Positions 35,832 to 60,396 of a stretch of 64,000 bases of DNA are shown one piece after another. Under the pieces are notes generated by a model, which was not told the DNA's origin, ran no database searches, and worked only from the letters and a program-made list of their open reading frames with translations. The stretch's first letter is position 1. The number at the start of each line of letters is the position of its first letter. The DNA is from Blastocladiella emersonii ATCC 22665 (taxonomy: Eukaryota; Fungi; Blastocladiomycota). The stretch spans positions 1,054,001 through 1,118,000 of the forward strand of contig JANHCV010000011.1 of the NCBI GenBank assembly GCA_025594325.1, in the 5' to 3' direction. The position numbers and the translations under genes are program-made.

Positions 35832-38116
35832 CTAGTCCAACGTCGAGCTGTTGACGTGGTCTCCTTGCGCGTTGCTGCCTTGGGCTGCCGCCTCAATGAT
35901 GGTGTTGGCAAACGAGGCAAGCGAACTCACCTCCGACTCCTCGCTACCGCTGACGAGCGACTCGTCGTCGCTCCACTCGGTGTCGCGGAAAGCCACAGGA
36001 ACGAGATCCCGCTTCCACTGCGGGCTCGCGTCTGAGAGTTTAAGCAGGTCGCGGCACACCCACTTGGCGTTGATGGGGAGAAGTTCTTCGAGCAGAAGCT
36101 GCGTCGTGGGCATGGTCCAGCTGTAGGAAGCTGGATCCGCCGCCTCGGAGCTGAGTCGCGCCTGCAGCGCATCGTTGGACGCGAAGAAAGTCGGATGCGG
36201 AAAGAACTCGTTTGCGAAACGCGCCTGTTCGAGCCCTTTCGGGTACATGGCGAGGATCGTGTGGAACGCGAAGCGCCACGGTGTCCACGATGCGGGCGCG
36301 TCCGGGTGCAGCGTGACCTCGAGATGGTCGAGTGATGGCCCGTTCGGCGACTGCAAATGCTTGAGGAGAAGGATTTCGAGGTAGAAGCAGGTACGCCAGC
36401 GCGGACCCCAGTCATCGACGCCGCCGATCTGGCACATCGCGGTTGCCTGATGCTCGGGACGGTTCAGCATGTAAACGACGAGATCGGCGAGGTGAAGTGC
36501 AGCGTCGGTCTTAAGAAAATCGGCATGCGACGGGGCCTTGCTGAAGAGCTCGCGGAAGACCATGGCCGGATCGTGCGAGTGAGGCGGGCTGATCAGCGCC
36601 TGGCCCATGGTAGGAAAGTACCGGTAGAAGTGGTCCATCATTTCCATGTCCCACTCGGTAATCTCGTGAATCTGAATCCCGTTCTCAAGCGCGAGCAAAA
36701 GTCCGAATCGAGCCGTCTCGAACTGGGTGATTTGATCGAAAGCAAAATACGTGAAAACTAACAGGCGAAGTGGGCAGTGTGAGTGCGAGCCAATACTTGT
36801 AAATGAAGCAAATGGGCGAACGCACCGTGCTCCTTCAGCCTGCTGTGAAAATCGCGAGGATCAAGGACCTCTTTGGCGAAATCGAACATTGCCCGGTCGC
36901 AGCGAAGCAGGGCGGCTTGCAGTTGCTGCGTCAGGAGGTGCCCTGTTCTGATACCAAGATCAGCGAAGCGGTGCAGCTGATCAACTGTGAGGTAATGGTT
37001 TGAGAGGTGGGCTCCGAGATACCCCTCGAACTCGTACGCTTCGCCTCCGTCGTGACCGTAATCATAAAACAGACGTTCGAAGGGAGATCTGGAGCGAGGA
37101 CCCTCGTTTTTGCCGAACTCGGCGTGGACTGCAGCGATGAGTTCGGGAGCTGCGCGAGCCAAGACGACCTCGGCATAGTACGGGTACCTGCTGGGGCTCG
37201 GATACCAATCATTGTCAAGTAGCCACTCAAGATCGTCGAGTATCACATCGTTAGAGAGGTGTTCGGCCTTGACGTAGGTTGAGAGTAGGACGACACCATG
37301 GTCGCTTGACGCGTGCTCGATGATTGTGTTACGCTTGAGCCCGAAGGGCCGCTCCTCGAGACGGATTGCGGAGTCAATGTCCCATTGAAAGACGGCGCGC
37401 GCTCCAAGGTACGAGACGAGTCCAAGCGCGGGATGTCTGCCCAAGCGACATGGCTGCGACCACTTGTAAAGATTGCGCACGATGCAGCTGTCCCATTCGC
37501 AGCCGAGAAAGTGGAGATCCAAGAGCCTGCAAGTCCAGGGGCGGAAGCAGTTTAGTTTGTTTCGGAGACAAAGGACGAGGTGCTCGAGCAAGTCGAGTTC
37601 GCCAATCAGTCCGAGAAAGTTGGTTACTTGGAGCAGGACGATAACCGGGTGCCACGACGCAGGACCGAAAGCGGATGCGCTGGCGGCCTCGGTCATGGCG
37701 GTAACATACGCGATCCACGCCTGCTTGTCAGTGCGATTGAGACGACGACGTTGCATATCGGCCTCGATGGCATCCACAAGGCATTCAAGGAAGCTGCGAT
37801 TGAACGGGAGTGCAGGGCGATGAGCCTCCTCGCCTCGCACATCCGCGGCCCATGCCGCGCGATCAGCAACCAAGAGGCGACCAAGGTACGCGCTCGTGCG
37901 CATGCGGATCGGGAGGTTCGGCTCTGGCCACTTGGGTCGGACGACCAGGAGCTCATCGTCTCGAACGAGGACCATCCGGAGCCAGGCATAGTCCAAGTTA
38001 CCCGAGGAAGAGAGCGTGTGGATAATTCGCGAGGCCGCGACGAGCACAGATCGCGGAGTGGCAAGCGCGGCGATGCACTCGAGCAGTTCGAGTGGAAGAG
38101 TCAACAAGGAAGTCAT
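35832..38116 (-). CDS. F-box-like / ankyrin-like orphan family, subfamily 2, copy E (two exons)
   Basis: N-terminus LLTLPLELLECIAALATPRSVL. Phase-1 intron 36758-36825 (GTGCGT...TTAG) joins ORFs 36758..38143 and 35832..36698 in frame (KEH|VFTYFAF...LLALENG). Confidence 0.7.
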
Positions 38117-38237
38117 TGCATGAAGTTGCAAGGTTTCATTCATAGCCGTTCATGAGTTTCATAGGGGTCGCGAAGAGCGCAAGAGTGAGACCGAACGCGC
38201 GTTTCAAAGTCTGGCTGGCCACGAGATGAGCGACGCG

Positions 38238-38296
38238 TCGCCTTTCGCCTTTCGCCTTTCGCCCCTTTCGCCTTTCGCCTTTCGCCTTGCGCCTTT
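38238..38296. repeat. Heptamer microsatellite (TCGCCTT/CGCCTTT)n
   Basis: About 8 imperfect tandem copies visible directly. Confidence 0.9.
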
Positions 38297-39056
38297 TGAT
38301 TCACGTCGGAGATCGCACCACGGACTGAAACGAACCCAAACCCAACTTGGTTTCCTCCCGTACCGCCCTCCTCAATTGGGCTCGTTGCTGACGGTGAACC
38401 TGGCTCAGACTCAGTTTGAGTAAAGAGTCAAGCTCGTGCGCTCGCCGCACTTGCGTCGCCCATCGAGCGGCACGCCTTCAGCTCGCCACACGTGCGTCGC
38501 CCATCGAGAGGCACGCCTTCCGCACTCCCTCCCTTGTCAGAAGCCGTACGATGTATTCATGGAGAATGACCGAATGCAATCATTGACTGAGGCTATACAC
38601 ATGGATCCTATGCAACCGGCCCGCCCGCGGCCGACCTTGCTCTCGGCCGCTGCCAAGGCTCTGCTCCAAACTCAGGTTACGCCATTCGGTGGCCGCTAAC
38701 GCCGACGTGAAAAGCTGTATCATGATCATTTGTCTTGCGTACTTTGTGCCAGAAGCTCACTCGGTTGGGAGCGACTGCGGCTTTCGCAGGCGCTGCTTCT
38801 CATTGCCCTCGTTCGCTGCGCTACGCGAGGCTCCTGCAGTGAGCGAGCTTGTCAGCACGACCCTACAGCAGCTCCTCGACGATTTGAATCGTACCCGTTA
38901 ATTTTGAAAATGGTTCGTGTGAGGCTTAGCGACAATAACGGCACAGTATAGCACACCTGACTTGCTGGTGCGTCCGCTGCTGCCCTGACACTGGCGAGGG
39001 ACTTCACATAGTTTCTTTTTAACGCTTTTTATCTCCCGCCGTACTTCTTTTCAACG

Positions 39057-41408
39057 CTACTCATCGTCACCCGGTCCCTCCAAGTCCCAATCCGCCAGCT
39101 CGCTGTGGTTATTGCTCGTATCTCCGACGCTTGCAGCAGCCGTCATTGCGATTACGGCCTTGGCGAACGAGACAAGCGAGTCCGTGTTGTCGTCGCCGCT
39201 CGCGCTCTCGCTCTCGCTCTCGCTCCAATCCATGTCGCTCCAATCCATGTCGCGGAAAGCCACAGGCACGAGATCCCGCTTCCACTGCGGGCTCGCGTCC
39301 GAGAGCTTGAGCAAGTCGCGGCACACCCACTTGGCGTTGACAGGAAGCAGCTCCTCGACTAACAGCTGCGTCGTGGGCATGGTTCAGCTGCAGTACGACG
39401 GATCAGCGGCCTCGGCGGCAAGTCGCGCCAGCAGCGCGTCGTCCGACAGAAAGAACGTTTGGGGCGGGATTCGGAGCGGAACGCGCGCGTCGACCAACCG
39501 CGACTGCTTGAGCGCGCTCGGGTACATTGCAAGAACCGCGTGAAGCGCAAACCGCCACGGCGTCCACGATGCGGGCGCGTCCGGGTGAAGCGGGATTGGA
39601 AGATGCTCGAGAGAAGCCGCGTTCGGGGCTCGCGAGTGCTTGAGAAGCAAGACATCGAGATAGAAGCTCGTGATGCCGCGCACGCCCATATCGTCGACGC
39701 CGCTAATCTGGTGCAACGCCGTGGCGTAGTGCTCGGGGCTGTTGAGCGCGAACACGGTGAGATCGGCAAGGTGAAGCGCGGCGGTGGTCTCGAGGAAACG
39801 CGAGCCGCGGAATGCCTGGTTGAAAAGCTGGACAAAGACCGCGGCTGGGTCATGCGAGAGCGGCGGGCTGACGAGATCTTGGGTCATGGTCGGAAATCGC
39901 TGGAAGAAACTGTCAACGGTGACATTATCCCAATCTAGGAGGTTGTCAACAGAAAGGTCGTTCTCAAGGGCAAGCGAGAGACCAAAGCGAACAGGTTCAA
40001 GGTCGGTGAGCCGCTTGAGAGAAGCGAGGGCTATAGTAAACAGCGGCAGTGCAACGTCCGTGAGCAGTTGTCGAAGGCAGCGTGTCGTCAGTGAGCAGTT
40101 TTGGCGATTATGCCCCGCGTACCTTCCCAGTCCAGCCTGGATTGAAACGCAGCTTGGCCCAGCGTTTCCCGAGCAAAGTCAAACATGGCGCGATCTCAGC
40201 GAGGCAGGGCCATTTCAAGCTGTTGCGTCAAAAGTTGCTGCAGTCCAATCCCAACTTTAGCAAAGCGACGCATCTGGTCCACGGAGAGATAACGCTTCGC
40301 GACAGCCCTGGCTAGCTCGTTTTCAAAAACGAGCGCGTCGCCCTCCTCGCCGTCGAGATAGTCGAACGTGCCCTCGTCATCGACTGGGTCTGGATCAGGA
40401 TCACGGGTGCGGCCGAAGGCAGCGTGGACCGCAGCAATCAGATCGGGGTCCTCGCGGGCAAGCACAAACGCGGCATAGTGCGTGAAATCGTCGTGACGCA
40501 GTCGCCAACCGTGGTCGTAAAGCCAATGGAGCTGAGCTAGAATCGTGTCGTTGCTAATGTGCTTCGAGTCGATGGATGCGAGAAGAAGGTAAATACCACC
40601 TTCGCTCGACGCAAGAGTGGCCATATTCTCGTGATTGAACTTGAAGCCCTGTTGCGTAAGGAGCCGCAGCAACTCAATGTCCCATTGGAGGACGGCACGC
40701 ATTGCGAGGTAGAAGGGGATGCCAAGGGCAAGATATTTTCCAGGGGATTCGCACTGATTCGCCCACTCGTGCAGGGCGCGCATTGGCTCATTTCTCCACT
40801 CGCAGCTGAGGTAAAAGAAGTCGAGCAATTCGCAGGTCCAGGGCGAGAATGCGGGTAGGTGAGCCTCGAGACTTCTTAAAGCGTGGGCAATCAGGTCAAT
40901 CCGCCCCGCCAAGACAAGGACGGTCAAGACCTGGAGGAGAATGACAGCGGGATGCCACGTCGAGACGCCAGCAGTGTGAGTACCAGCGTCATCGGTCACC
41001 GACGCAATATACATGGTCCACGCGTCGTCGTCGCCGCACATCGGCCACGATATAAAGCACGAGTCGATGCAGAAAGTCACGAGTAAACGGGAGGGTTGGT
41101 CGGGCGATTACGACCTCGCCTTGCATGGCCGCGGCGCGCGCAGAACGATCCGCTGCGAGGAGCCGACCGAGATACAGGCTCATGTGCGTGCGGAGGGGCA
41201 CCCTTCGTTGGTGCGGCTTGGGCAATACGCCGAACGCCACGTTCTCTCGGACAACCACGAACCGAAGCCACGCGTAGTGAAGGGAACCAGAGACAGAAAG
41301 CGTGTGCACGACCCTCGAGGTCGCGAGCAGCACCGCCCGCGGAGTAGCAAGTAACACGACGCGCTCGAGTATGTCATAAGGAAGCTCCGGTTGGGACAGG
41401 GTTGACAT
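39057..41408 (-). pseudogene. F-box-like family subfamily 2, copy D, pseudogene
   Basis: Colinear with copy E, including the intron. Four lesions: deletion frameshift at about 41030, TGC>TGA at 40196, +1 frameshift at about 39960, and TGG>TGA at 39384. Confidence 0.8.
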
Positions 41409-41685
41409 TGCATAAAGTGGCGAAAGTTTATTCATCAGTTTCATGCGTTGACTATCGCGGCCACGGAGAGGCGGGCGTGAGATCGCTCGGCGCGTCCTTC
41501 GCCGCTCAGCGAGGCGTTTCAGCTCGCAGCGATCACATGATATCAAAACGCGTCTCCACCAACCTGCTCGAGGACGTTGAGAGTCGTGCAACTCCACGAG
41601 AAAACGAAATCGATATGTGCAGCGAAAAGAATGACGTGTATGAAACGATCAACCCGAGCAGGAAGGGTGAGGTCAAGGGTACAAA
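41391..41685. repeat. Diverged direct repeat (subfamily-2 start + promoter + spacer), copy 1
   Basis: Aligns by eye with 41958-42245 (GACATTGCATA..., GGAGAGGC.GGCGTG.GATCGC, CTCGCAGCGATCACATGATATC.AAACGCGTCTC, GCAGCG...GAATGA.GTGTATG). Confidence 0.75.
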
Positions 41686-41957
41686 GTGTGGACGGCGGCC
41701 GAGTTTTCGCTGGTGCGCGACGACGCGGACGTGGCGCTGGCCGCGTTGCAAGTCCCGTCGCTCGTCGACACGTGCATCAAGAAGATCGTGGACCTGATCG
41801 ACGACGTCGAATCGCTGGGCGACCTGTCCAAGAACGCGCTGCGCAAGTTTGCGCGCGTCGTGTGCAAGAAGCGCATGCTCAACGCGGGCCCGCTGCCGCT
41901 GTTCACGGGCGACCACGTCACGTCGCTGACGCTCTTCGACGTGACGCTGACCGACGT
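41686..41957 (+). pseudogene. RAD7: Isolated internal fragment of a RAD7/Rhp7-like LRR nucleotide-excision-repair gene
   Basis: VPSLVDTCIKKIVDLIDDVESLGDLSKNALRKFARVVCKKRML...LFTGDHVTSLTLFD matches my recollection of the Rad7/Rhp7 pre-LRR block. Host-like GC3-rich codons; no start, stop or flanking exons. Confidence 0.72.
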
Positions 41958-42245
41958 TTGGGGCAGGGCCGACATTGCATACAGTGGCAGAGGTTATCCA
42001 TCAGTGTTCATCATATTGTCATTGTGGAGGCGGAGAGGCAGGCGTGTGATCGCACAGCGCTCCCTCATCGCGCCGCAAAATAGCGTCTCGCAGCGATCAC
42101 ATGATATCGAAACGCGTCTCAAGACACATCCAAAGTCAAGGGAACCGCGATAGACCAGAATGGTAGGAGCAGCGCCGAGAATGAAGTGTATGGGACGAGG
42201 AATTTGGGCTGATAGGGTGTGGGTGGGAACAGAGTCAGGGTCGGC
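41958..42245. repeat. Diverged direct repeat copy 2, including a truncated subfamily-2 start (ATG at 41975, MSALPQ)
   Basis: See copy 1; homology to copy D stops about 6 codons after the ATG, where the RAD7 fragment begins. Confidence 0.75.
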
Positions 42246-42253
42246 ATGGAGCA

Positions 42254-44671
42254 TCAGATCGGGGCGTCGTAGGCCTCCATGAAAGCGGGCGAACATGCGA
42301 CGGTGGGAGCGAGGTGATGCAGACCCTCACGCACGCCGGGTGGGAGCGCGTTATCGTGGGTCGGCGCGGTGGCGGTAGCATCAGAGGCGGTGGTGACTTG
42401 CGCCGCGAGAATGGCCAGCTCGTGCAGGGTCGCGACACCGTCGAACACGCCTCCGGGGAGCTGCGCCCAGACCTGCAGAGCGACAGCGAGTCCGCACGGC
42501 GTCGTCAGCAGGGCGTCGAGCATTGCGCGCGGCATGGCCGTCGCAACAGCGTGCGCGACCCGGAGCACCGTGGCGTTGCGGTCGCAAGCACATTGCGGCG
42601 ATCCGGGCGCCGCGGATCCGTGCTTCCGGCCGTCGTGACCAGCGGCACACTTGACAAGGTAGTCCAACAGCCGCTTGGGAAGCCGGAGATCGCGCGCGAT
42701 TGCCGTGGACAACGGAAACGCTTCCAGCAAGGCGGCGAGCGCGTCGCGCCAGGCCTGGTGCCACGATAGCGGACAGGTCGCGCAAACGACGAGGCCAGGC
42801 AACGTGCCGTAGACGCGGTTGCGGATGTGAGGTTGATGCTGATAGTCTGCGTCGTGCAAAAGTGAAGAGATCATATCGCTGCGAAGCTTGACCCCGCGAT
42901 TCGCGACCCGCATCATCTCGAGCGCCGGTCCGCGGGTTTGCGGGTCTGACAAGACTGCGACGGCAAGACGGGCGAGATTCAGGTAAGTGGCCGGAGAGTA
43001 CCCGTCGGTTTGGACCTGCATCCGCCGCATGACCATGCTGAGCAGATCCAGCGGCCGAATATCCATGTCGCCGCCCAGAAGCGCCGTGAACGGATCCAAA
43101 CACTCGCGAGAACCAGGACCGTTTGGCTGTTGAGGCGCGCGTGAGAACACGTTGCACAACGCGTCGAGATCAACAAGACCAGTTTCGAGAAGTCGGACCA
43201 CTCCATTTTGAATCAAAGTGTAGCGCTTGATTGCGCGCTCGAATGCTACACAACACCGTAACCCCTGTGAGTACCGTCGAACACACACGCTGAAGGGAAG
43301 CTGAACGGTACCACTCAATAGCGCCGCTCTCGTTCGAAGGTCCCCGATGCTCCCTCGAAGGGCAGTCACGGCGTCGTTGTGGTTAGAATGGCCCAGGCCG
43401 ACGACGAGGACGACAGCCACAGCTTCGCAGTCGCCCCGCTTCAATGCGGACGCGAGAACCTGCAGCCAGGCCTCATCCGACGCGAACTTGCGATCCAGAA
43501 GAAGCTCGAGGTTCGCGATTGTGAGCTTGCCCGCGTCAAACCACTGGCAAAGAGCCGTGTTTGATCTGTAGCACTGCAAGTGGTCGAGCGAGCGCCTGCC
43601 ATCGCGCTCGAAGAGCTTGCTGCAGCTGCACAGGAGCGTGAAGAAGTGGGTGGGTCCGCTCAAAAGCACGATTTCATAAATCACGGAAGGGGGCGAGCTA
43701 CGGCACCATCCATGGGCGTACAGCCATGCAATGACCTGGGAAAGCTGACCAGGAATATTGCCGATCTTGACCGAATCCCTGAGATGCAGGAGCATATGTC
43801 GACCGAGCCCGCTGCCCTCGAGGAGGTCAATTACAGCACTTGGCGATAATCCAAAGCGTTGGTCGAGCCCAAGGATTTCGAGCGAGCTCGATTGCCAGCT
43901 CGCGACGGCAAAGTAACCAAGCGCGTCAATGAGCCTGGCCTGACACGGTGTGAAGATACGGGCGTAGCCTCTGCCACACGAGTACGGCTTTAGGCCGTGG
44001 GCAACTGCAACGAAGCTCCAGTGATCAATATCCATGACAACATCAAGCAAATTCGGGAGAGCCGTGCGCGCGAGATCCAGAAGTTGTTTGAGCAACTTGG
44101 CCTGGCCAGTCATCGCGGCTGCAAAGAGGGACTGGACGAAGGCTGGGACCGCGTGCAGCCGAGGGTGATCGACTAGCCGATTGTCGTACAGCTGGAACGC
44201 CTTCTTCAGGGACCCCACATCAATGGCATTGCCGTGCTTTCGAGTCTCGGCCGGGATCCAGTGCGAGAACAAACTTGCCAGCCGGGGGAGAAGTGAGGGC
44301 TCGTGATTCCAGACGTGACCACCGTATTTAAGGTCAAATGGCTTGTTTGAATCGCCATCTCCCATCAATACGGGAAAAGGATTGACGCGTGAGCAGCGAA
44401 ACGTGAGGATGTGCCGCATGTGCGAAGTCGGGGAACCGTTTGGAGCCTCCGAGGCGCTCAGCAACTGCGCGAGTGAGCCGACGATTTGGTCCGTCCAGTG
44501 AATTCCAATGCGCTCGTCTTTGATCAAGCGGCGGAGACACGCCGAAGCGGTGCAGACGAGAGTTCGCGGGGCCGCGAGCGGAAGCATCATGCCGAGGATC
44601 TCGGGCGGCAAGTAATAATGCGCAAGAGTGGACAGCGGCGGGACCGCGTCGGATTGCATGAGGTCTTTCAT
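42254..44671 (-). CDS. F-box-like / ankyrin-like orphan family, subfamily 1, copy A
   Basis: 805-aa ORF; YLPPEILGMMLPLAAPR N-terminus; ankyrin-like FAAAMTGQAKLLKQLL and LASALKRGDCEAVAVVL; probable in-frame 66-nt intron 43246-43311 (GTACCG...TACTCAC...TAG). Confidence 0.75.
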   Translation of the reverse strand: MKDLMQSDAVPPLSTLAHYYLPPEILGMMLPLAAPRTLVCTASACLRRLIKDERIGIHWTDQIVGSLAQLLSASEAPNGSPTSHMRHILTFRCSRVNPFPVLMGDGDSNKPFDLKYGGHVWNHEPSLLPRLASLFSHWIPAETRKHGNAIDVGSLKKAFQLYDNRLVDHPRLHAVPAFVQSLFAAAMTGQAKLLKQLLDLARTALPNLLDVVMDIDHWSFVAVAHGLKPYSCGRGYARIFTPCQARLIDALGYFAVASWQSSSLEILGLDQRFGLSPSAVIDLLEGSGLGRHMLLHLRDSVKIGNIPGQLSQVIAWLYAHGWCRSSPPSVIYEIVLLSGPTHFFTLLCSCSKLFERDGRRSLDHLQCYRSNTALCQWFDAGKLTIANLELLLDRKFASDEAWLQVLASALKRGDCEAVAVVLVVGLGHSNHNDAVTALRGSIGDLRTRAALLSGTVQLPFSVCVRRYSQGLRCCVAFERAIKRYTLIQNGVVRLLETGLVDLDALCNVFSRAPQQPNGPGSRECLDPFTALLGGDMDIRPLDLLSMVMRRMQVQTDGYSPATYLNLARLAVAVLSDPQTRGPALEMMRVANRGVKLRSDMISSLLHDADYQHQPHIRNRVYGTLPGLVVCATCPLSWHQAWRDALAALLEAFPLSTAIARDLRLPKRLLDYLVKCAAGHDGRKHGSAAPGSPQCACDRNATVLRVAHAVATAMPRAMLDALLTTPCGLAVALQVWAQLPGGVFDGVATLHELAILAAQVTTASDATATAPTHDNALPPGVREGLHHLAPTVACSPAFMEAYDAPI

Positions 44672-44691
44672 GGCGATACGTGGCCGAGAAT

Positions 44692-44988
44692 GGACACGTT
44701 GCGCAATTTGGGCCTCCCCCCGAATCCTGAAAGGCTGGGCGCGTCACGCGACGCGCCGAACCGCAACGCAAGCGACCTGCCACGCCTCTCGACGAGCGCC
44801 GCACTCGCGACTCCCTGCAAAGCGAGGGCCGAACTTTCAGGCCTCGCTTCCGCGCGTCGGCCGGATGCGGCGCGCGGCGAAATGGGTGGCAGGTCGCGGC
44901 GGCGCCCGCAAGCTGGCGGCGGCGCAGGTCGCGTGGACGCGCCAGCCTTTCAAGATTCGGGGGGAGGCCCGAATTGCGCAACGTGTCC
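44692..44988. mobile_element. MITE, 297 bp, about 60-bp TIRs, 3-bp TSD (AAT)
   Basis: Left GGACACGTTGCGCAATTTGGGCCTCCCCCCGAATCCTGAAAGGCTGG is nearly the perfect reverse complement of the right end. AAT at 44689-44691 and 44989-44991. The element is absent from the homologous 5' region of copy B. Confidence 0.9.
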
Positions 44989-45059
44989 AATGAGTTGGGT
45001 GGGAGGGGCGAATGTGGCCGACGCGTGGGAAAACGCGAAGCGCGCTTGACCAACGCGTC

Positions 45060-45097
45060 ACATGTACAGTCACATGATTGTTTGTCGCGTCTCGCAG
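45060..45097. promoter_or_regulatory. Conserved upstream module TCACATG...TCACATGAT-N7-CGCGTCTCGCA (also at about 54405-54441)
   Basis: Near-identical upstream of copies A and B. The related CTCGCAGCGATCACATGAT-N7-CGCGTCTC occurs at 41523, 42087 and 51781. Confidence 0.5.
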
Positions 45098-46119
45098 TGC
45101 CTTTGCGGCGCCAAAAACGCGTCGCGCGCGCCTGCGCCAGCTTCTTGTAGCAGTTCGATCGTGCCTTGCACCAGCGCGCGCAAAGTTTGGCCAGGGGGAA
45201 GCATGATGTTGAACTTCCCCATGGGCCTGAATGGAGGCCATCGCGCCGCCAAGTACATATCGCATGAAGGTTCCATTAAACGAGCCAAGTCGATGGAATC
45301 CAGTGATTTGAGCGGTTTGGGCCGAAGGGGGGCTCCTCCCAAATGTGTGCGGTTGTCGTGCATGCCCTTGGCTCAGGCGAACGCGAGAAGGCTCGTCCGA
45401 TGAGATGTCGGATCAAGCAGCTGAGCCATGCGATAGCGCCCCGTGTGATGCGCGATGCTGAAGCAGCGGAACGACGTGTATACCTTGGATGTGGATTGCA
45501 GGTGGGAGTTCGTCGTGCGAGTTCGTTATGAACTGGTTAGAATGCGGCTGGAGCGAACTTTACCTGATCTCGCCCGACCCTCGCGCATTGATATTCAGAG
45601 CACGGAAGTTGGAAGCTCTCGGCCAACCTTACGCGGTCTTGCGACCAGCGACTGGAGGCCATGGCCACGGTGACCATGATCGCGGTGACCGTGAGACATG
45701 GCTGCTAAACGCTTGCTATTTCGGTGGCACGTCATTTCAGACAATCGCAATAGAGAGAATTTATTAAAAAAAGCTTGGACGATTCGCATCTTGCCAGCGG
45801 TGAGCCGCTGGCGTGTAATTTGCTTGCGTAGATGATATCCAGAGTTTCTACCCTTGGTCTCACATCTACAGAGTCAGTGATTTACTTGCGGCCATGGCCA
45901 GCGACGAGTCGGCGCGGCTACCGGTCGACGGCCATGGTCATGGCCGCCGTTGGTCGGGTCACCGCGGCCAGCTTTACCCCACCAAACTCCATTCGCAACG
46001 TGACCGAAACGGAGCACGGCGATCATTCAATAAAGTCGTGAGACACCTGGAGCATAGGAACAAAAAAGATCAGCTATATCTATCACTTCACACATAACCT
46101 CGCTCGCCTCCCTCTCGCC

Positions 46120-49100: not shown

Positions 49101-50176
49101 CGCGCTTGCGCGTGCCGGCGATCGGGTGCGTGTACACCTTGCGGCCGTCGACCTTGGCGAGCATCTCGGGCGAGGCGCCGACGATTGAAAAGTCCTTGAG
49201 GTCGAGGTAGAACATGTAGGGCGATGGGTTGAAGGACCGCAGCTGGCGGTACGCGTTGAACGGGTGCAGCTTGGTCGGCAGCCGCATGCGCTGCGAGGGC
49301 ACCGCCTGGAAGATGTCGCCGTCGACAATGTGGTGCTGCAGCGTGCGCACGAACCCCATGTACCCGTCCTTGCCGACGTTGGACTCGGCCGTCGGCCGCT
49401 CGGCGCGCGGCGGGATCGGCGCCTGCGCGGGGACGGGCACGTGGTCGGCGCTCAGCGTCGCGAGCAGCTGCGCGAGCCGGTGCGTGGCCTCGGCGTAGCG
49501 CAGGGAGACGTGGGCGTCGACGTCGGCGGGCGCGACGGAGTCGACGGGGACCTGGATGTGGGTGACGACCTTGATGACGTGGTGCAGGTGGTCGAAGACG
49601 ACGAGCGAGTCGCAGAACAGGAACACGGACTCGGGCAGGCCGAGCGTGTCTTTGAGCTCGCGGCGGGTGCGCGGCTCGAAGTACTGGATGCAGTCGAAGG
49701 CGACGAACCCGACGGCGCCGCCGGTAAAGCTGGGCAGGCCGGGGACGGGGACGAACTCGACGGCGGCCAGCTCGCGCTCGAGCGGCAGTAGCGGGTCGCC
49801 GTGGACGCGGAAGGCCTTGCCCTCGCCCGTGACGAGGATCTCGTACGGGTTGGCGCCGATGAACGAGTAGCGGCCAATCTGCTCGCCGCCGTGCACCGAC
49901 TCGAGCAGGAACGAGTAGTCGGCGGCCTCGGCCACCTTGAGGTACGCCGTCACGGGCGTCAGCAGGTCCGCCGGCAGCGTCGCGTACACGGGCACGTAGA
50001 CGGTCTTGCCGCGGGTCCCCGCGGACTGCACCTTGGCCACGGCCGCGTGCGCGAGCGACTGCACCGAGTCGAGCGCCGGCTGCAGCTGCGTTGGCTGTGG
50101 GTTGCGAGGGGGCGTTAGTGGGCGCCGGATCGGGCTCGCTGCTGACAGAGCAACGTACGGTCAAGCGAGTGGTCAT
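46120..50176 (-). CDS. Tetrafunctional tryptophan biosynthesis protein TrpE-TrpG-TrpC-TrpF (anthranilate synthase I + glutamine amidotransferase + IGP synthase + PRA isomerase), about 1330 aa
   Basis: TrpE: FLLESVHGGEQIGRYSF, PIAGTRKRG, EHIMLVDLGRND, FPAGTVSGSPK. TrpG: LIDNYDSF, ISPGPGHP, GVCLGEQ, QYHPES. TrpC: AEVKRASPSKG, LRKDF, GVNNRNL. TrpF: VKICGL, VQLHGSE, LAGGL, DVSSGVE. 6-codon first exon, intron 50095-50158. Confidence 0.95.
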
Positions 50177-50226: not shown

Positions 50227-50261
50227 GACGGCTGACGGCTGACGGCTGACGGCTGACGGCT
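50227..50261. repeat. Heptamer microsatellite (GACGGCT)5 in the TRP 5' region
   Basis: Five perfect copies about 50 nt upstream of the ATG. Confidence 0.9.
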
Positions 50262-50731: not shown

Positions 50732-51494
50732 ATGAGTCTCGCCCGCCAAGGTGGCCATGAAACTTGCTGCATGCATCGAGCGCCGAGTCACTGAGCGCGC
50801 TGACGTGCTGTGTCGTCGCGCGTGAGTGTAGCCTCCAGCAAGTCGTCGCTCGACCTCGGCCTGCCCGCCGCGCAGAGCGACGAGACGATCCAGTCGTACG
50901 CATCGACGCTGCTCGACTCGACGCGTGACCGAGGCTGACTGTGTCGACACGTAGTATCCACGATGCGCAGTCGCTGCGCTTCGACATGGTCATCGGCGAG
51001 ATCGAGAACATTCTGCTTGGTACGCGGCCTGTGGTACGCTCGTTCCTGGGATTGACGCTGATGCGAGAAGGAGTAGATCCCGAGTTCATCAAGATGCAGG
51101 ACGGCTTCTTCGACGCGCACTGCCACGAGTTTGAGAACAAGGACGAGAACAAGCTGATCTGCATGGACATTTTCCAGCGCTACGTGCGTACTGTCTCCCC
51201 CTGCTCCAATCATCGGCTCCCACTGACCCTCTCAAGCAGGTCCGCCTCGTCGAATCCTACCTCGACTCGCGCCTGCGCGCCGTCTTCGCGTGGTTCAGCA
51301 TGGCCGAGTTCATGCAGCAGTGCCGCGTCTTCGTGCGCTCCGACGAGGGCGCCGCGGGCGGCGACGTGTTCGACGTGCTGGCCTCGCTCGGCGACTTTGC
51401 CGCATTCAAGGAGATCATCCTCGCTTACCGCAACGGCCGCGAGGGGACCGCGCCGGATTTCAGCGACCTCCTCCACACGAGCCGCGTCGGCTAG
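50732..51494 (+). CDS. ARL2BP: ARL2-binding protein / BART domain protein
   Basis: Spliced FDMVIGEIENILL|DPEFIKMQDGFFD...EFENKDENKLICMDIFQRY...DVFDVLASLGDFAAFKEIILAYR. The first exon is tentative. Confidence 0.85.
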
Positions 51495-51962
51495 CGAGGC
51501 CGGAGCGATAACCCATCATCATCTTCACGAATGTGCATACCTTCACTTGATTTCTGACTCGTGGCAGTTTGACTGGATGTGGTCCGAACGCATGGCGCTG
51601 GCGTGGTCTGCGCTGCCAGAGCCGTCCGCGCTGATGGTTGTAAGTGGCCAGACGACAATGAGTGACGCGTTCTCGCATGTCGCGGAACTCGCTAGAGAGT
51701 GAAGCCACACATTACGGTCCCAGCAGACGTATGGGAAAACCTGAAGGCGGAAAGAGCAGCGGCCGCTAGGTGAAACGTGTCTCGCAGCGATCACATGATA
51801 TTGAAACGCGTCTCCTCCTGTTGCGACCGCCCACGCCGCGGCTGCCAATCTATAACGATGCAAGGTCTGAACTAAGCTCGTGGAAAGACAACAAACAGTG
51901 CGGGAGTGTATCTGGAACGAGCGATCAACGCATGCAATGAACACGAAAAGCAGGCAGAGGTC

Positions 51963-54305
51963 CTAGAGCGCATGCAACGAACCTTGGATCAGGGCGTCGT
52001 AGGCCTCCATGAAAGTGGAAGAGCTCGCGGTGGTGGGAGCGAGGTGATGCAGACCCTCGCGCACACTCGGCGGGGGTGCGTCGTCCTGGATCGGCGCAGC
52101 GGCAGTGATATCCAAAGCTGTGACCTGCGTCGCGAGCGCGGCCAGCTCTTGCGGGGTCGCGACACCGTCGAACACGCCGGCAGGAAGCTGTGCCCAGGCC
52201 CGCAGTGCGATGCCGAGGTTGTACGGCTTCTCCAACACGGCGTCAAGCATCGCGCGCGGTATGGCCGACGCGACGGCGTGTGCGACCTGGAGCAGCGCCG
52301 CGTTGCGGTCGCAGCAACACTTGGGCAATCCGGGCGTCGCGGAGTCGCGCTCCGCGACCTCGTGTTCAGCTGCAGACTTGACGAGACACGCCCACACGCG
52401 CTCGGGAAGCATGGCATCGTTCGCGTCGTCAGGTGACAACGGAAACTCATCGATTAAGGTATCCAACGTGTAACGCCAGGCCGAGTGCCACGAAAACGGA
52501 CAAGTCGAGCAAACGGCAAGACCGGGCAGCTTACCGCTGACGCGGTCCCGGTTGCTGCGAAGTTGGTCCGCGTCAAACTCGAGCGACAAGATCATCGCGC
52601 TGCGGATCTTGGAGCCGCAACCAGCAACTCGCATCTTGTCGACCGCCGCGCCGCGGAGCTGCCGATCCGACATAGCTGCGACAGCGAGGCGGGCGAGATT
52701 CACGTGTGAGATTGGGAGCAAGGCATCGTCCTGGACCCGCATCCGGCGCAGGACCATGGTGAGCAGGTCCAGCGGCTTCTCAACCATGTCGCCTGCAAGG
52801 AGATTGGTGTACAAGTCTAGACGACCACCGGAACCGTGGGCGCCCGTTTCCTCGTCCATGCAAGCAAAGGCTTTGTTCAAGTCGGACCGGCTCACAAGAC
52901 CCGTCTTGACGAGTCGGCCAAGAATTTGCTGGACCGAGCTGGCGCGACGAAGGCAAGCCTGGAAGGCTAAACGTTGCCAGGAATCCAGTTAGTGCTCGGG
53001 GCCCTGAGCCGCTCGCTCGAACAATGTGGTACCAGTCTGTAACATCGTGCTCCATTGCTCCGCATCGAGCTGCCCTTTGAGAGCGACCACCGCGTCGCCC
53101 TTGCTTTTTCGTCCCAGCGCGGCAAGAAGTTTGAGTCGCAGCACGTCGGGAACGAGGTCGTGCATCAGAAGATGCTCCACGTTGGCAGGTGAAAGCAACC
53201 CTGCAGTCAACCACTTTACGCATGCCTGGAACATCGGGCGTTCGACCGCGCAAGAGGTAGATCCGTCGTCGCGTGTAAGAGTGAAGACCTCGCTACGTTG
53301 GGAAAGGATCGTGAAGAAGCAAACGGGACCGCCCAAGAACACGGTTTCATTGAACAGGTCCGATCCCGCGAGGTCGCGCTCTCCGTCGTGAGCGTGAAGC
53401 CACATGATGACCTGAGCAAGCTGGTCCGGAACACCACATAGCTTGACCGGAAAATCGAGATACATGTGCAACAGCCGATCGAGGTTGCTCTGAGCCAAAA
53501 GTGGGGCGATAGCTCCCGGAGCAAACCCAAACCGCGATTCGAGCTCGAGAGCCTCGAGCGAGCGAAATTGCCAGTTGACGACGGCAAAGAAGCCGAGCGC
53601 GTCGATGAATCGGGTCGGAAGCGGGACAAAGATACGCGTTTGGCGTCTGAGAAACTCGCGCAGCGTCGAGCCCTTGAGATGGGCAACGACCCACCAGTGC
53701 TCGAGGTCCGTGGTCGCATTGAGAAGGTCCGGAAAGTCCGAGAGTACGATGCCGAGAACGTGATGGAGGAGGTCGACCTGGCCGGTTGCGGCGGCCCCAA
53801 ACGCGATTTGAAGGAAGGCCGGGAGAGCGTGATAGCGAGGGTGCTCGTTCGATTGAGCGCAATAGTGCGTGAGCAGCTTGTCCAGAGAATCCGTGTCGAA
53901 TTCGCTTGTCGGGGCACGGATCCGGTGCGAGAGCGAGGTCGCGAAGAGGGCAATCAGCGAGGCATTTGAGGTCGAACTGGCACTGCCCATCAAGTGGTAG
54001 ACGGTAGAGAAAGCGCAGTTGTCAAACAGTCTCGCGTAGCGAAGCGCAGTTTCGTCGGGTACGGATGAGGGTACACGAGCTGGCTGAGCCCCGAGCTGCT
54101 GAGCCAGAGAATCCGCAGCCCGATCGACCCAGTGGAAGGTGATGTGCTTGTCTTGGACCAAGTGGTGAAAGCATGCCGATGCGGCGCAGACGATGGCGCG
54201 CGGGGCAGCGAGCCGGACGATGACACCGAGGATCTCGGGCGGCAGATAAATGTGCGCAAGAGTGGACAGCGGCGTGCCCGCGTTGGATTGCATGATGTGC
54301 TCCAT
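51963..54305 (-). CDS. F-box-like / ankyrin-like orphan family, subfamily 1, copy B
   Basis: MEHIMQSNAG...YLPPEILGVIVRLAAPR. The apparent TAA at 52989 lies in a 66-nt intron 52967-53032 (GTACCA...CACTAAC...TAG) at the same position as in copy A. C-terminus FMEAYDAL is shared with A. Confidence 0.75.
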
Positions 54306-55511
54306 TGCAATATGTGGGCGAGGATCGCTTGAGTGTGGGGAGGGAATGCGTTCGTGGGCGCCGCGACGCGTGAGAACACGCGACGCTTTTTCAACGCGAG
54401 CGTCACATGGGCGGTCACATGATTGTTTGCCGCGTCTCGCATCGGGCTCGCGGTGCCGAAATGCGCTGTTTGCCGTCCAAGCGCAAACACAATCTTTTTC
54501 TCGCGTTGCCGAGGCCGCCGCCAACGAAGAGTAATCGTTGACCCTGACCTGCGCGGACGTTCCCACAGCGGAGGTTTGCGTGCGCACTGCCGCGGCGATC
54601 TTGGCAACCACTGGAACTGTCAATCGCCTTACTCACGCACAATGAAGCATCGCACTATGCCGACCGGCTGATGTCGCTCAAACCACAAGGCTCAGCGCAC
54701 GAGCAAGATGCATGGGGCGATCCAAACGAGTGTTGGTATCGCGGAAACAAGTCGTGTGTTGCGGAGCGGAAGGAGTGGAGGATACTGCCTGTAGATGATC
54801 GGGGCAGCGAGTAGCGAGAAGAGAAGTGGGAGGCGACCAGTGTCGCACGCGCCGCGCGACGCGTCATTCAGGCGGCGGTACGTGGGACCGAGATGTCTCG
54901 CGTCCTGCGCCGATCCGTCAATCAGAACCGATGCGACGAAGGAAAGCCTTGAAAGCTACAAAAATGAATTGCGCGAGATATCCCAGTAAGCGCATGGGAA
55001 ACCTGAATCGCTAGCGAGCAAACCCGTAGTGGCCGCCACAAAACCCGGAGCACCCAAATTGGCGCGAATTGGGCCTCAATTGCGTTCATACGAGCGGCGG
55101 CCGAATTGGGGTTTTCATAACGGTCGAACTCGGCCTCAATTGGGCTGATATGGCCTCAGTTGGGCGAGGCGGCTCAATTGATTGCAATCGGCCCCGATTG
55201 GTCCCGTTTGGGCCCATATGGCTTGTTTTGGTACCGACTGGGATCAAGTGATGGCCGGGCGCGTATCACGCGCGAATAGGGCTATGGTGTGCATCCTGAT
55301 GCCCATTCTGATGGTTTGATGGCCTGGATCACGTGTCGCCGGCGTGACCGCGTATATTCATATCGCAATTGATCAATTGCTTTCACCGTCATGAAGTCAC
55401 GAGAGTCACGAGATGCTGAATAATGATATATCGTGTCGTAATCCGACCGCTCGCCCCGCGCCCCGCGCCCCGCCCGCTCGCCCGACGCCAGGACCCACAC
55501 GCGCGCCGCTG

Positions 55512-56350
55512 CTACTTCTTATTCTCGGGGCCGATGGTCACGCTGAGCTGCTCCTCTGCCACTTCCCGCGCGTCGAAGGCGTCCTGGGCGTGGAGCGCGT
55601 CGACCACGGCCTTGTGGGCCGCCGTCGCCTTGTCCTTGTCCTTGTCCATGGACTCGTAGGTACCCTCGTGCGCCAGCGCAATGGCGAACCTGTACGCCTA
55701 GCGGTACGAGCGCCGCCGGTCAGCGAGTAGGGCATCGCCTAGGCAGCGAGCGCGTACAAGGACCACGATGGCCGCGATGATCTCGACCGCGTACTGCTTG
55801 ATGGTGCCAGAGTCGTCGGCCGAGACAGCGGGTGCGTGTTCGGGCTGCATCCACGGCTTCATGTCGCTCTCCTTGTTGCGGCTCGGGCAGTGCAGGAGCT
55901 GGATCATGGGCGCGAGGTCCTCGATGAGCTCGTCTGTTCAGAGCGTGCGCGCGAAGTGGGGGAGGATCAGGATCGAGCACATCGCACGCGGGGTCATAGC
56001 GCGAGCGAGCCGGCTTGCGCGGGGGCCAGCAGCGGGACCAGCACGTACGAGATGATCACGGGCGCCTGGGTCACGCTGCGATCCGACGGCGGCCGCGCGC
56101 GTTGGCAATGGTCTTCGACTCCTACACGACTGAGCCGTGGTGAGCAAAGGCCCCGAGGGCGACCCACGCGCGACGTACCAACTCGTCGCCGCGTTTCCCG
56201 CGCTTGGTCTTGTGCGAGAACTTGTAGCGGCGCTTGTGGAACAGCTTGACAAACGCCTCGTCGCCCGACGGCGTGTAGGGGCCGCGGACGAGGACGAGCG
56301 TCTTGCGCGCCAGAGTGAAGGCCTTTCCGGGCGACTTGACCACGCGGGTA
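55512..56350 (-). CDS. Multi-exon hypothetical ORF inside the element (passenger or accessory ORF)
   Basis: Host-like codons and GTACG/TAG introns. Segments: VVKSPGKAFTLARKTLVLVRGPYTPSGDEAFVKLFHKRRY; ELIEDLAPMIQLLHCP...AIVVL|AYRFAIALAHEG...ENKK*. Exon joining and 5' end unresolved. Confidence 0.4.
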
Positions 56351-57739
56351 GCGGGCTGGACACGCGATGGCGTCGGTGGCGATGAGGGCGAGTTCACGCG
56401 CGGCGCATGTGGCGGACGGGGCGGAACACGGCGACCGTCGGCGCCGACGTGGTCCTGGAGCGAGAAAGGCGGGCAGGTGTGAGTGGACAAGCGTCTTGAG
56501 CGCGAAGCTTCGGGCGTAAGGATGTAGGGAGGGGAAGCTTGCGACGTGGACGCCGCACAATCGCGCCGCACCGCGCCGTTCAAGGCAGGCTCGCGGCGAC
56601 AGCAGCGCGTTGGCAGCGAGACCAAGTCGGGCGGGAGATGGGCGAGAAGAATGCGAGGCCGAGTCGAGCGGGAGATGGGCGGGGCGAATGGGAGCAGGGA
56701 GCAAATGGGCGGGCGGGAGCAGGACGGCGTACGTCGACCTGGCCTTGACCCGAGCCACGGGTCACGGTCGCCTCGAGGGTCGACGGCATCGGCACCACGG
56801 CTTGCACTGCGGCTAGTTCCACGGCCGCGGCCGTGGCTGCCGCCGCTACGCGACTCGCAGGGCCAGTCGGGGACCGGCCACGGTCGTGTCTCGAGCAGCG
56901 ACACGGTGGCGAGCGAGCGCTTGAGCCACTGCGACCGCGAGCGTTGCCGTCCGAGGTGCCACTACAGCCGCCAGCGCAAGACGCGGAGGGTGAGACCGAG
57001 CGGATAGCGTCGCGGCGTCGTGGGCCGCACCTCAGCTACGGCGGCGACGTGCGTCCGTGCGCGTCGCAGATGGAGGAGCGAGGGCGATGCATGGCGCTAC
57101 GTGGAGCCAATGGTCGTCGGCGGGAGCGGGAGCGGAAGCGCGGGCGACGCAGCGACTTTGAGCCGGAATGGATCCAAGACACCGACCACCGGCGCGCGCG
57201 CGCGCGCGGCCAAGTCGCATCGTTCTCAGCGATCAGCTGACCGCCCGATCGCGCCTCGTTCAGTGAGGGAGGACGCGACGCGCCACGGGCGCCACGAGTG
57301 CCGCCACCGCTCGCCGACCCCGCCGACCCCATCTTCGCTTCCACGACACTCTGCAACGTCCTTAACTTGATGCAAACTCATGAAACTAGCCGGATGCATA
57401 CGGCTCTGCGTGTAGCTGCGCTCCGCCGCTACTTCACCAAGTCGGCCTTGGACAACGGCGACGTTTGCGCTTCCTCCTCCCACCGCAGCCTCTTCACCCA
57501 AGCTGGGACCTGCTCGTCGTCGACCTGCACAATTGGGCGACCAATCTTAGAGTATTCTGCACGGGCGGGTGCTGACGCGAGCTGTGTGAGAGAAAGCGCG
57601 CCTTGCACATCGAATGCCGCCTTCTGCTGCCCACCATCGAGTCAGTTGACATGCGCAACGGGGCCCTGGACTGAGAGTAGTTGCTCTGCGCGGCTGAGCG
57701 ATACGCTCTCGCTTCTGCTGCTTCCAATTTGTTTGGAGC

Positions 57740-58563
57740 CACCTTGATCCACTCGCGCGTCCGTGTTGAGGCACCCGCGCACCCCCTCGCCCAGCAGCTC
57801 AACACGCTCAACAACTTCGAGCAGGTCGCCATGGTGGGCGTCATGAACGTCATCGACGAGGCCGGCGGGAACAGCGGCGCACGACGGCGCTACGATCATC
57901 GATGCCCGTTGTCGCCTTGCTCAAGGTGTACCAGACGGTTATTTTGGCGAAACATAGCGAGCTCCTCGACGAAACGGTCCAGGAGTTCATACGCGCGCGC
58001 GTCTTTACGCTGTACGGCTCGCTTCGCTGGGATACCATGATCGTACGTTTTCGCGTGTGTGACGCGCGCCCGTCGCTGCGTCGATTCACGCGCGCAGTCG
58101 CTGACGGGTGCTCGCATGCTTGTAGGTCCGCCTTGACGATGGCCAGCGGTGCTTTGTCGAGCCGCGCATCTTCCTCGAGTTTGACTACGAGGATGGAAAG
58201 GACACCATGTACGCCTTCAACGTCGTGTTCGGCTACCACCTTCAGCGGCAACTCAACGGGCCGCACGACGACCTGGGCTACCTCAAGCTCACGCGAAGCG
58301 CCGCGCCCTTTGCCGTGTCGGCCGCGGCCGTCGAGGTCGCTGCTCATGTCGTGCCCGCGTTCTCTGCGACGACGAGCGCGCAAAAGGTGCTCAAGGAGCT
58401 CAAGATGCCGTTCGTGCGTCCCGAGAAAGGCGCCCGCTCCAGTGGGTCGCGGGCCACGGCCGCGCGCCAGAGCCACTTCACGCGCTTCTGGCTCAACCCG
58501 TGCGTGAGCCGCGACCAGTACCACATCGGCGAGCTTCCAGGCTTCCTGGACTCGATCCGCTAG
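57740..58563 (+). pseudogene. Remnant resembling the C-terminal region of Plavaka/CACTA-type transposases
   Basis: IRARVFTLYGSLRWDTMI|VRLDDGQRCFVEPRIFLEFDY...VEVAAHVVPAF...RFWLNP parallels the remembered RYDCVFV...VARVRLFFSF...RAAHLIP...FYVN pattern. Frame break near 57890; no catalytic core seen. Confidence 0.5.
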
Positions 58564-60396
58564 CGCGCGGCGGCCGCTTCACACGCCGCAGCGCGCTACG
58601 CGCGCACATCTGCCCCCTCAGCTGCTATCCCACTTTTCGCGCTTCTCATATATCGAGTACTTCCCGCCGCCGAACCTGTCGCTCAATTGGCCCCGAATTG
58701 GGTCCAGCTCAGCCCGAGTCCCTGACCCTCAATTCGCCCTGTATGAGGCTCAACTCATCAGGGTAGCTCATATGAAGTCAATTGTGCTGACCGACACCCA
58801 TTTCAAGTCATATGGTCCCAGTTGACCGTTCCGGGTTTTGTGATGACTACCGTCTGACAGCATCGCGCTCCAATGATCCCAATCGAACAGCCGGTCGAGC
58901 TCAGCCTCCGCGTCCATCTGTTCTTGGCGAACTTTTGTTGCAAGAAGCCGGGGCCGCAACGTGATGGGAAGGAGGTTGTCCCGCAGAAGCAGCTCCACGA
59001 TTATAGGCGTAAGCGCCCCTTCGGACAACCACTCCTCACATACATGTGACATGAAAGCTCTTTCCGCACAGTAGGTAGATCCGTCATGGCGCGTGCGAGA
59101 ATCGAGTTCTTTGTAGTGTGAGAAGATTGTGAAGCACGGTTCATCTCGACGCCGATTCGACCCCGAAAGCTCGCGCGCTCCGTGTATGTAGAGCCAGACG
59201 ATGACATGGACGAATTGGTCATGCACATTGCCTTCCTTGACGGAAAACTCGTGATACATGGATGTCATGCGATCGAAATTGCTGTCGGTCAACAGCGGGG
59301 CGACAGCAGCTCCCGGAGCAAATCCGAACCGCAGGTCAAGCTCAAGAGCCTCGAGCGAACGAAACTGCCAGTTGACGACGGCAAAGAAGCCGAGCGCGTC
59401 GATGAATCGGGTTGGGAGCTGGTCATTGACACGTGGTTGAAACATGAAGAATTCGACTAGCTTCGAGTCCTTGAGATGGGCGATGGCCCACCAGTGCTCG
59501 AGGTCCGTGGTCGCATTGAGAAGGTCGGGGAAGTCCGCGTGTACGATACCGAGAACGTGATTGAGGAGGCCAACCTGGCCGGTCGCTGCAGCTCCAAACG
59601 CGATTTGGAGGAAGGCCGGAAGCGCGTGATAGCGAGGGTGCTCGTCTGATTGAGCCCAATAGTGCGTCAGCTGTTTGTCCAGGGAGTCCGTGCAAAAATT
59701 GCTCGCCCGGGCGCGGATTCGGCGCGCGAGTGAGGTCGCGAGGAGGGCGAAGAGCGACGATTTCGAGGTCGAACTGGCACTGCCCATCAAATGAAAGACG
59801 GTAAAGAAAGCACATTTGTCAATCAGATCCTCGTGGCGGATCGCATATTCGTCAAGAGTGGACGAGGGTGCACGAGCTGGGGGAGCGCCCAGCTGCTGCG
59901 CGAGCGAATCCGCGACCGGATCAACCAAGTGGAAAGCAACAACCTTGTCTCGAGCCGCATGATATAGAGACTCCGAGGCGGAGCAGACAACGACGCGCGG
60001 CTCGGCCAGTCGAAGAACCAGACCGGCGATTTCGGGCGGCAGATAAACGTGTGCAAGAGTGGACGGCGGCGAGCCCGCGTCGAATTGCATCAAGTGATCC
60101 ATGGTGATGTGTGAGCGAAAGTAAGTTGAGGGTGGAGAGAGCGGGAAGCGGCAGCCCATGCGAAACTCGAAGCGACGACGCGAAACGAAACGCGTCGCCG
60201 CGCGCGACAACGGGTCATGTGAGCCGCGATCAACGTCGGATTCGACGTCCCTGCCGACTTCGCCACCCCCTTTCCCCTCGCCCGACTGCCCGTCTCTTGC
60301 ACAGACTTGGCGCAATACGCTCGAGAGCGTCCCATGTTATCACTGGCCCGCCGGCTTTCTCTATCCGCCGGTCGCTCGCGCCATCTCGCTACCGCC

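Follow-up and report, generated by a model that had tools for sequence, protein, structure and literature searches.

The window considered here is a stretch of 64,000 nucleotides from the genome of Blastocladiella emersonii ATCC 22665 (contig C3, positions 1054001-1118000; the assembly comprises 32.65 Mb in 21 contigs), and it carries five related genes or gene remnants, designated E, D, A, B and C, which all lie on the minus strand. Their paralogy, first recognized in an initial annotation made from the sequence alone, was borne out by the list of open reading frames (ORFs), by pairwise BLASTP and by tblastn, and the start motif LPxE(I/L)L..V..LA.PR is present in all five copies. The islands that they occupy are indeed poorer in GC (0.56-0.63, against 0.65-0.75 elsewhere in the window), and the GC content at third codon positions (GC3) is 0.65-0.78 in the family copies versus 0.96 in the neighbouring Trp gene.

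From the comparison of the copies with one another, two subfamilies can be distinguished. A, B and C form the A-type, within which B is 38% identical to A in the N-terminal half and 58% in the C-terminal half, and C, which is devoid of the C-terminal domain, is 57% identical to B (BLASTP). E and D, which were searched as separate exons or pieces rather than as joined models, form the E-type, with 41% identity between them (BLASTP) and 43-45% identity between E and its paralogues elsewhere in the genome. The BLASTP link from E to A is confined to the N-terminus (E-value 0.008). Nevertheless, the kinship of the subfamilies, which had been proposed from similar core motifs, holds on a genome-wide scale: 35 paralogues align over ~430 residues, with the W of WL..HGW invariant, and the C-terminal domains of both subfamilies are related to each other (hhalign 78%, E-value 1.7e-5, 186 columns), CPL..QQPWR.AL being conserved in their joint alignment. 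Taken together, the long joint alignment and the related C-terminal domains indicate a single superfamily with one layout over its full length, in which a divergent F-box-like module would occupy the extreme N-terminus, followed by a degenerate ankyrin-like solenoid of ~300 residues and, at the C-terminal end, by a conserved helical domain.

The F-box-like nature of the N-terminus was examined by profile-profile comparison. An alignment of 49 family N-termini (A1) was matched by hhalign to two non-overlapping sets of Pfam-positive F-box domains from the same genome, namely 20 of the best ones (A2; probability 88.5%, E-value 2.7e-6, score 30.4) and a second set of 16 (A8; probability 95.1%, E-value 3.1e-8, score 38.9). 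The match spans 37-40 columns in both replicates, and the alignment of A1 with A2 sets LPxEL on LPxEL and AAS..L on V.r.W. Scores of the controls are far lower, with 8.5±1.9 (maximum 16) for column-shuffled profiles, 9.0 for reversed ones and 6-18 for unrelated natural profile pairs; furthermore, within a 447-column profile of the family, the F-box profile matches the LPxEL region alone, with a score of 31.5 and a next-best of 10.6. In scans of single sequences, four of the 49 N-termini match PF12937 (F-box-like) at an E-value of 10 or below, the best at 0.0079, and this is the sole Pfam family matched by more than two of them. Homology of the N-terminal module to F-box domains is thus, at the level of sequence profiles, well supported. 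The LPxE(I/L)L core provides the main Skp1 contacts in solved structures of SCF (Skp1-Cullin-F-box) ubiquitin ligases, and the motif is retained in the homologues from Catenaria and Blastocladiella britannica. Further upstream, an M-x-x-x-M-Q start lies ~15 residues before LP and is conserved in both subfamilies (A1 columns 1-6; e.g. 44654-44671), which is unusual for the region preceding an F-box. Three Skp1-like loci were found in the genome (C15:2012492-2012704, C1:792512-792658 and C1:3199651-3199794); F-box expansions are often accompanied by extra Skp1 paralogues.

Run on paralogue alignments, AlphaFold2 predicts an all-alpha structure, with a predicted local distance difference test score (pLDDT) of 71 for full-length A and, for its residues 1-460, a pLDDT of 77.5 and a predicted template modelling score of 0.77; helix pairs follow one another with a period of 31-35 residues from ~210 to 455. 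A VIA-align comparison with 48,161 chains returned Z-scores of 5.5-8.0, and most of the 50 best rows for residues 95-430 are ankyrin domains, among them those of RNase L, IkB proteins, Fem1B, ASB7/9/11, Notch, DARPins and Legionella AnkB, although a Z below 8 (below 13 for helical repeats) may reflect no more than a similar arrangement. All ten of the closest named ESM-Atlas clusters are likewise ankyrin (0.89-0.91), a result that is weak when taken alone, and the Foldseek list of viral structures in BFVD is headed and filled by 'F-box and ankyrin' proteins of giant viruses (pithovirus, pandoravirus, marseillevirus and orpheovirus), none significant and the best with an E-value of 0.02. Foldseek against the PDB found generic alpha-solenoids only, for both models (E-value > 0.003), with E-values > 0.05 where an ankyrin-type solenoid is at issue; these fold searches scarcely covered the N-terminal module. 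The C-terminal domain, ~490-805, loosely resembles HEAT/ARM/TOG-type bundles (VIA-align, Z ~6). Pfam searches with 40 family pieces and 83 database homologues revealed no recurrent family, and the single hits obtained (helicase, GPCR, Alba) seem to stem from merged gene models. A separate observation concerns the C-terminal tail C.CD...W..LP.G.fDG (A9 188-259; A ~690-770; ~42360-42600), which in a PDB profile search weakly matched the C-terminal part of lamprey variable lymphocyte receptors (VLR) and repebodies (14 chains, best E-value 0.007). This kinship is not trusted: since the region is modelled as helices, the match is probably a coincidence of the Cys/Trp pattern.

The family was found in high copy number across the genome. 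A profile of the N-terminus finds 561 candidates, 150 of which were scored, all with E-values of 2.3e-11 or below, and there are at least 64 genome matches with A and 28 with E. Copies sit among housekeeping genes on at least 13 contigs and are unevenly spread, as C17 carries 41 of the 150 scored N-termini, C5 24, C21 20, C11 12 and C4 11, while none of them lies on C1 (the largest contig), C15 or C16. They are also clustered, many of them forming co-oriented tandem arrays with a spacing of ~2.7 kb, and long intact ORFs are numerous (e.g. 805, 829 and 1016 residues). Outside this genome, the family appears to be restricted to a narrow lineage: only 84 hits were obtained in 1.84 billion representative proteins, and all 30 whose source was checked come from Blastocladiella or Catenaria, being 'hypothetical proteins' of B. 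emersonii, B. britannica and Catenaria anguillulae. About 20 B. emersonii members of the family are annotated as proteins. A word-based homologue search with A gave no match, not even to A itself, and no database homologue has a match in the window above 75% identity.

With regard to the integrity of the copies, the initial annotation had assigned a phase-1 intron to each of them, and this did not stand. A is one unbroken ORF. In B, the frame is broken by an in-frame TAA (52989-52991) amid sequence that aligns residue for residue with the coding sequence of A, and the break is consequently taken as a nonsense codon rather than an intron, which makes B a second probable pseudogene. In E, removal of a 74-nt GT..AG interval (36796-36723) at the only break would restore the reading frame in phase 0, and an E-type paralogue elsewhere in the genome (L032) reads through the same region as a continuous ORF. 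D is confirmed as a pseudogene by a +1 frame change near 41035-41043 (two tblastn segments) and an in-frame stop at 39384-39386 (ORF frames), and three of the five copies in the window (B, D and C) are broken. The truncated start reported between D and A is real, repeating 41388-41556 of D with 76% identity over 171 nt (blastn); antisense to it runs an ORF (41686-42153, plus strand) with no Pfam match at E <= 0.01.

The two hits by transposable elements (TEs) were likewise found as described. An element bounded by terminal inverted repeats (TIRs) cuts C, whose reading frame continues into it; tblastn detects no family homology between 54306 and 58842, and ORFs within the element have no Pfam match. 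An element resembling a miniature inverted-repeat transposable element (MITE) sits 20 bp upstream of the ATG of A, where it interrupts an upstream segment common to A and B. Tandem arrays, pseudogenes and TE hits thus agree with the birth-and-death mode that had been proposed for the family. That the family is itself a multicopy gene encoded by TEs is a possibility that failed when examined, since no near-identical copies with shared terminal repeats were found and the number of synonymous substitutions per site (dS) between copies is 0.6-1.7. Similarity between copies ends at the coding sequence plus a leader of ~170 nt, with no common terminal repeats, and transposase, integrase and reverse-transcriptase domains are absent from the Pfam hits of the 83 database homologues.

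Selection was estimated by the pairwise Nei-Gojobori method. The ratio of nonsynonymous to synonymous substitution rates (dN/dS) ranges from 0.26 to 0.78, a blunt measure given the high dS and the fact that several partners are pseudogenes, with 0.31-0.34 in the F-box part and the highest values (0.6-0.78) in the linkers and at the end of the solenoid. Judged from these pairwise values, constraint is present and is stronger on the N-terminal module. The F-box part lies at the low end of the range, no value exceeds 1, and positive selection was not detected at this resolution.

The reading that we favour, with a probability somewhat better than even, is that these copies belong to a divergent F-box superfamily restricted to the Blastocladiales, whose members would act as exchangeable SCF substrate receptors and undergo birth and death in a duplication-prone compartment of lower GC. 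Such a receptor would attach to the Skp1 subunit of an SCF ubiquitin ligase through its N-terminal module and would select the protein destined for ubiquitination with its variable helical body. Growth of the family would proceed by tandem duplication, yielding co-oriented arrays in TE-rich regions of lower GC that are limited to some of the contigs, and copies would be lost via nonsense mutations, frameshifts and TE insertions. Purely by analogy with the F-box expansions of nematodes and plants, a role against viruses or parasites can be proposed. A role as secreted effectors is unlikely, because the N-terminus does not look like a signal peptide (judged by eye, without a predictor) and is taken up by the F-box-like module, and because B. 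emersonii is free-living.

It is nevertheless important to set out the results that weigh against the SCF-receptor reading, which concern the N-terminal module, the body and the state of the copies. A Pfam search with all ORFs of the window gave no F-box match, none of the copies reaches a Pfam F-box threshold, and at E <= 10 the six-frame genome matches of PF12937 (72 places) and PF00646 (52) include no window copy. In the family alignment, the tryptophan of canonical F-boxes (V-x-K-x-W) is not conserved at its position, PDB-sequence profile searches with N-terminal alignments found no F-box protein, and AlphaFold2, run without Skp1, models the module (pLDDT 65-83) as a long helix (23-51) and a second helix (53-73). 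For the body, the structural matches stay under the level that is trustworthy for helical repeats (Z < 8, Foldseek E-value > 0.003), the ankyrin consensus TPLH...GH..V..LL..GA is absent (Pfam Ank in one of 40 members, E-value 0.092), a profile of this genome's Ank_2 domains matches the family with an hhalign probability of 2-10% only (score 20-24), self-comparison uncovers no internal sequence repeats, and PDB profile searches with the N-half and C-terminal alignments gave no ankyrin or F-box match. The proposed ankyrin-like body therefore stands as far as the all-alpha model and the ankyrin-dominated structural lists (Z 6-8) are concerned, but lacks an ankyrin signature at the sequence level; 'ankyrin-like' is a fair description of the predicted shape and not a family assignment. 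Finally, the codon bias of the copies is weak, as seen from their GC3, the open frame is shorter than 300 residues around 49 of the 150 scored N-termini, with stops inside the match in 13, and the window copies appear to have no public gene models, as judged from their absence in two protein libraries. Weak codon bias, missing annotation and short frames around about one third of the N-termini together imply that many copies may be unexpressed or dead.

Among the alternatives, the one that survives best, although we consider it clearly less probable than the SCF-receptor reading, is that the module descends from an F-box and no longer binds Skp1, so that the proteins would be helical-repeat scaffolds or adaptors working outside SCF or with another partner, e.g. 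a Skp1 paralogue that serves a different complex. The sub-threshold Pfam scores, the AlphaFold2 models without a canonical three-helix F-box, and the loss of the tryptophan position whilst the family-specific positions P22, L32, R36 and W59 are kept would all fit such a change, as would three Skp1-like loci that may be specialised. Yet the best-conserved positions are those of the LPxE(I/L)L core, that is, the very residues through which F-boxes mainly contact Skp1, the profile match covers 37-40 domain columns in both replicates, and the module lies at the extreme N-terminus ahead of a repeat domain, which is the typical order of F-box proteins.

A further alternative, to which we give a lower probability still, holds that the copies are mostly genomic debris, either a multicopy sequence that is selfish or linked to TEs, or a family in decay that has no present function and resembles genes only because it once consisted of them. 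It draws on the three broken copies out of five, the short or interrupted frames around scored N-termini, the low GC3, the TEs in and beside copies and the lack of window copies among the public proteins searched. Against it, dN/dS stays at 0.3-0.5 over most regions despite the age and divergence of the copies, and Catenaria has retained the same motifs; homology stops at the coding sequence and a short leader, with no shared terminal repeats, and many long intact ORFs exist besides the ~20 members annotated as proteins. Origin from, or exchange with, giant viruses (Nucleocytoviricota), with the lower-GC islands as viral relics, is very improbable. In its favour, N-terminal F-box plus ankyrin proteins make up the largest paralogue families of giant viruses and dominate the BFVD list, one ESM-Atlas neighbour cluster is viral, and the GC content of the islands is reduced. 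On the other hand, none of the structural matches is significant, the 30 of 84 homologues with a checked source include no viral or metagenomic protein, copies lie between housekeeping genes on at least 13 contigs, E-type copies carry a candidate spliceosomal-type intron, and no viral hallmark gene was seen, no search having been aimed at such genes.

The features of the family islands are compiled in Table 1.

Table 1. Family copies, their parts and associated mobile elements (window positions; regions of A are approximate and given in residues).
Feature	Position	Strand	Basis
Copy E, E-type, apparently intact	35832-38143	-	ORFs, junction sequence, comparison with L032
E exon 1, 449 codons	36797-38143	-	ORF
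E candidate intron, 74 nt, GT..AG, phase 0	36723-36796	-	Junction sequence
E exon 2, 296 codons plus stop	35832-36722	-	ORF
E F-box-like N-terminal module	37934-38143	-	Profile hit C3:1091934-1092143, E-value 1.7e-19
Copy D, E-type, pseudogene	39057-41435	-	Four ORF pieces; tblastn with E in two frames
D F-box-like module	41226-41435	-	Profile hit, E-value 6e-21
Truncated start (D leader and first ~20 codons duplicated, no gene body)	41955-42120	-	blastn
Copy A, A-type, uninterrupted 805-residue ORF	42254-44671	-	ORF; profile hit, E-value 6.5e-21
A F-box-like module, residues 1-73	44450-44671	-	Profile hit
A linker (low-confidence), residues 74-125			AlphaFold2, VIA-align
A predicted ankyrin-like helical solenoid, residues ~126-430			AlphaFold2, VIA-align
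A linker (low-confidence), residues ~434-487			AlphaFold2, VIA-align
A predicted C-terminal helical domain, residues ~490-805			AlphaFold2, VIA-align
MITE-like element, 62-nt terminal inverted repeats, 87% complementary	44691-44989		Inverted and direct repeats; upstream match of A and B
Copy B, A-type, probable pseudogene	51963-54305	-	BLASTP to A; read-through match with one TAA
B F-box-like module	54081-54305	-	
TIR-bounded insertion, ends CACAAAACCCGG...	55037-58842		26-nt inverted repeats 55037-55062 / 58817-58842
Copy C, A-type, ~420 N-terminal codons only	58843-60102	-	BLASTP, tblastn
C F-box-like module	59878-60102	-	Profile hit, E-value 2.3e-20

Two other genes lie among the copies. 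The Trp gene (46120-50064, minus strand) is a single ORF of 1314 residues encoding a TrpE-TrpG-TrpC-TrpF fusion, which is annotated in GenBank (100% match to a B. emersonii ATCC 22665 protein) and has counterparts of similar length and Pfam content in B. britannica, Allomyces, Sorochytrium and many chytrids (71-46% identity); judged from these sequences, the fusion is known and conserved in zoosporic fungi. Between it and B, an ORF on the plus strand (50941-51702) encodes an ARL2-binding BART domain (PF11527, E-value 2.7e-9) and is an ordinary gene at the edge of the island.

Elsewhere in the genome, scored N-termini occur as mirror-image pairs with identical scores on opposite strands, at C11 1.959-2.058 Mb and C17 0.900-0.927 Mb, and further such pairs lie at C5 0.516-0.640 and 1.127-1.250 Mb, C18 54-89 kb and C21 1.655-1.662 Mb. 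Such an arrangement points to inverted (palindromic) duplications of large segments in family-rich regions, or else to artefacts of the assembly. Other F-box genes were also found near family clusters (C8:327643-327774, C11:1974427-1983289, C17:1606957-1634661 and C5:1162873-1163031), of which some exceed the Pfam cut-off and others fall short of it and are not family members; several F-box families may thus be expanding in the same regions.

No genomic sign shows more clearly than an expansion of F-box receptors that a lineage uses targeted protein destruction as an adaptable recognition system, and we know of no such expansion described in zoosporic fungi. Among the publications retrieved by a full-text search for the species name together with 'F-box', no title concerns such a family, and in the genome paper 'ankyrin' is absent and 'expansion' occurs once, with respect to Allomyces. 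In a genome of 32.7 Mb, at least 150 copies, and perhaps several hundred, escape Pfam and for the most part seem to be absent from the public proteome, so that gene counts and comparisons for this model fungus probably overlook a notable part of its coding potential. The family also marks a lower-GC, TE-rich and duplication-prone compartment, and offers a possible handle on genome compartments in an early-diverging fungus. More tentatively, and in our view doubtful for now, these several hundred largely unannotated genes, confined to particular contigs of Blastocladiella and shared with Catenaria, could represent a fast-turnover repertoire for intracellular recognition that serves either innate immunity via SCF against viruses or other intracellular parasites, or self/non-self discrimination. 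Such a repertoire would be independent in origin of the nematode and plant expansions, and its layout would be convergent with that of the F-box/ankyrin families that giant viruses turn against their hosts.

When compared with known systems, the family shares with F-box proteins (PF00646 / PF12937) the ~40-residue N-terminal LPxE(I/L)L module followed by a repeat domain, a homology seen at the profile level. In contrast to them, it stays below every Pfam threshold, does not keep the canonical tryptophan and has features of its own, namely the M...MQ start, LA.PR and a W ~37 residues after LP, and neither its body nor its C-terminal domain matches a described family. An F-box followed by an ankyrin-type solenoid is also the order found in Legionella pneumophila AnkB (F-box plus ANK; PDB 5k35, in complex with Skp1) and in the F-box/ankyrin families of pandoraviruses, pithoviruses and marseilleviruses, so that the layout mirrors the tools that Legionella and giant viruses direct against host SCF ligases. 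The ankyrin domain of AnkB superposes on residues 172-324 of A (Z 5.9-6.5, root-mean-square deviation 3.8-4.3 Å, 104-108 residues); however, no sequence similarity to AnkB or the viral families was found, the repeats of the fungal family are degenerate and without the ankyrin consensus, and the family comprises cellular, intron-bearing (candidate) fungal genes with an extra C-terminal domain of ~300 residues. Fem1B and ASB7/9/11, which rank among the top solenoid matches (Z 6.2-6.9), combine a cullin-docking box with an ankyrin-type recognition surface, a logic that the family would share, except that their SOCS or VHL box is C-terminal and docks on Elongin B/C, whereas the box of the family is N-terminal and F-box-like. 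Lineage-specific birth-and-death expansions of F-box genes are represented by FBXA/FTH in Caenorhabditis, the FBX families of plants and the F-box-like genes of agaricomycetes. Although the present family departs from these in its undescribed body domain, its occurrence in the phylum Blastocladiomycota, the scarcity of its copies in the annotation and the absence of detectable positive selection in pairwise dN/dS, it resembles them in its hundreds of (candidate) copies, tandem arrays, many pseudogenes and regional clustering, and in the combination of a conserved F-box with a faster-changing body.

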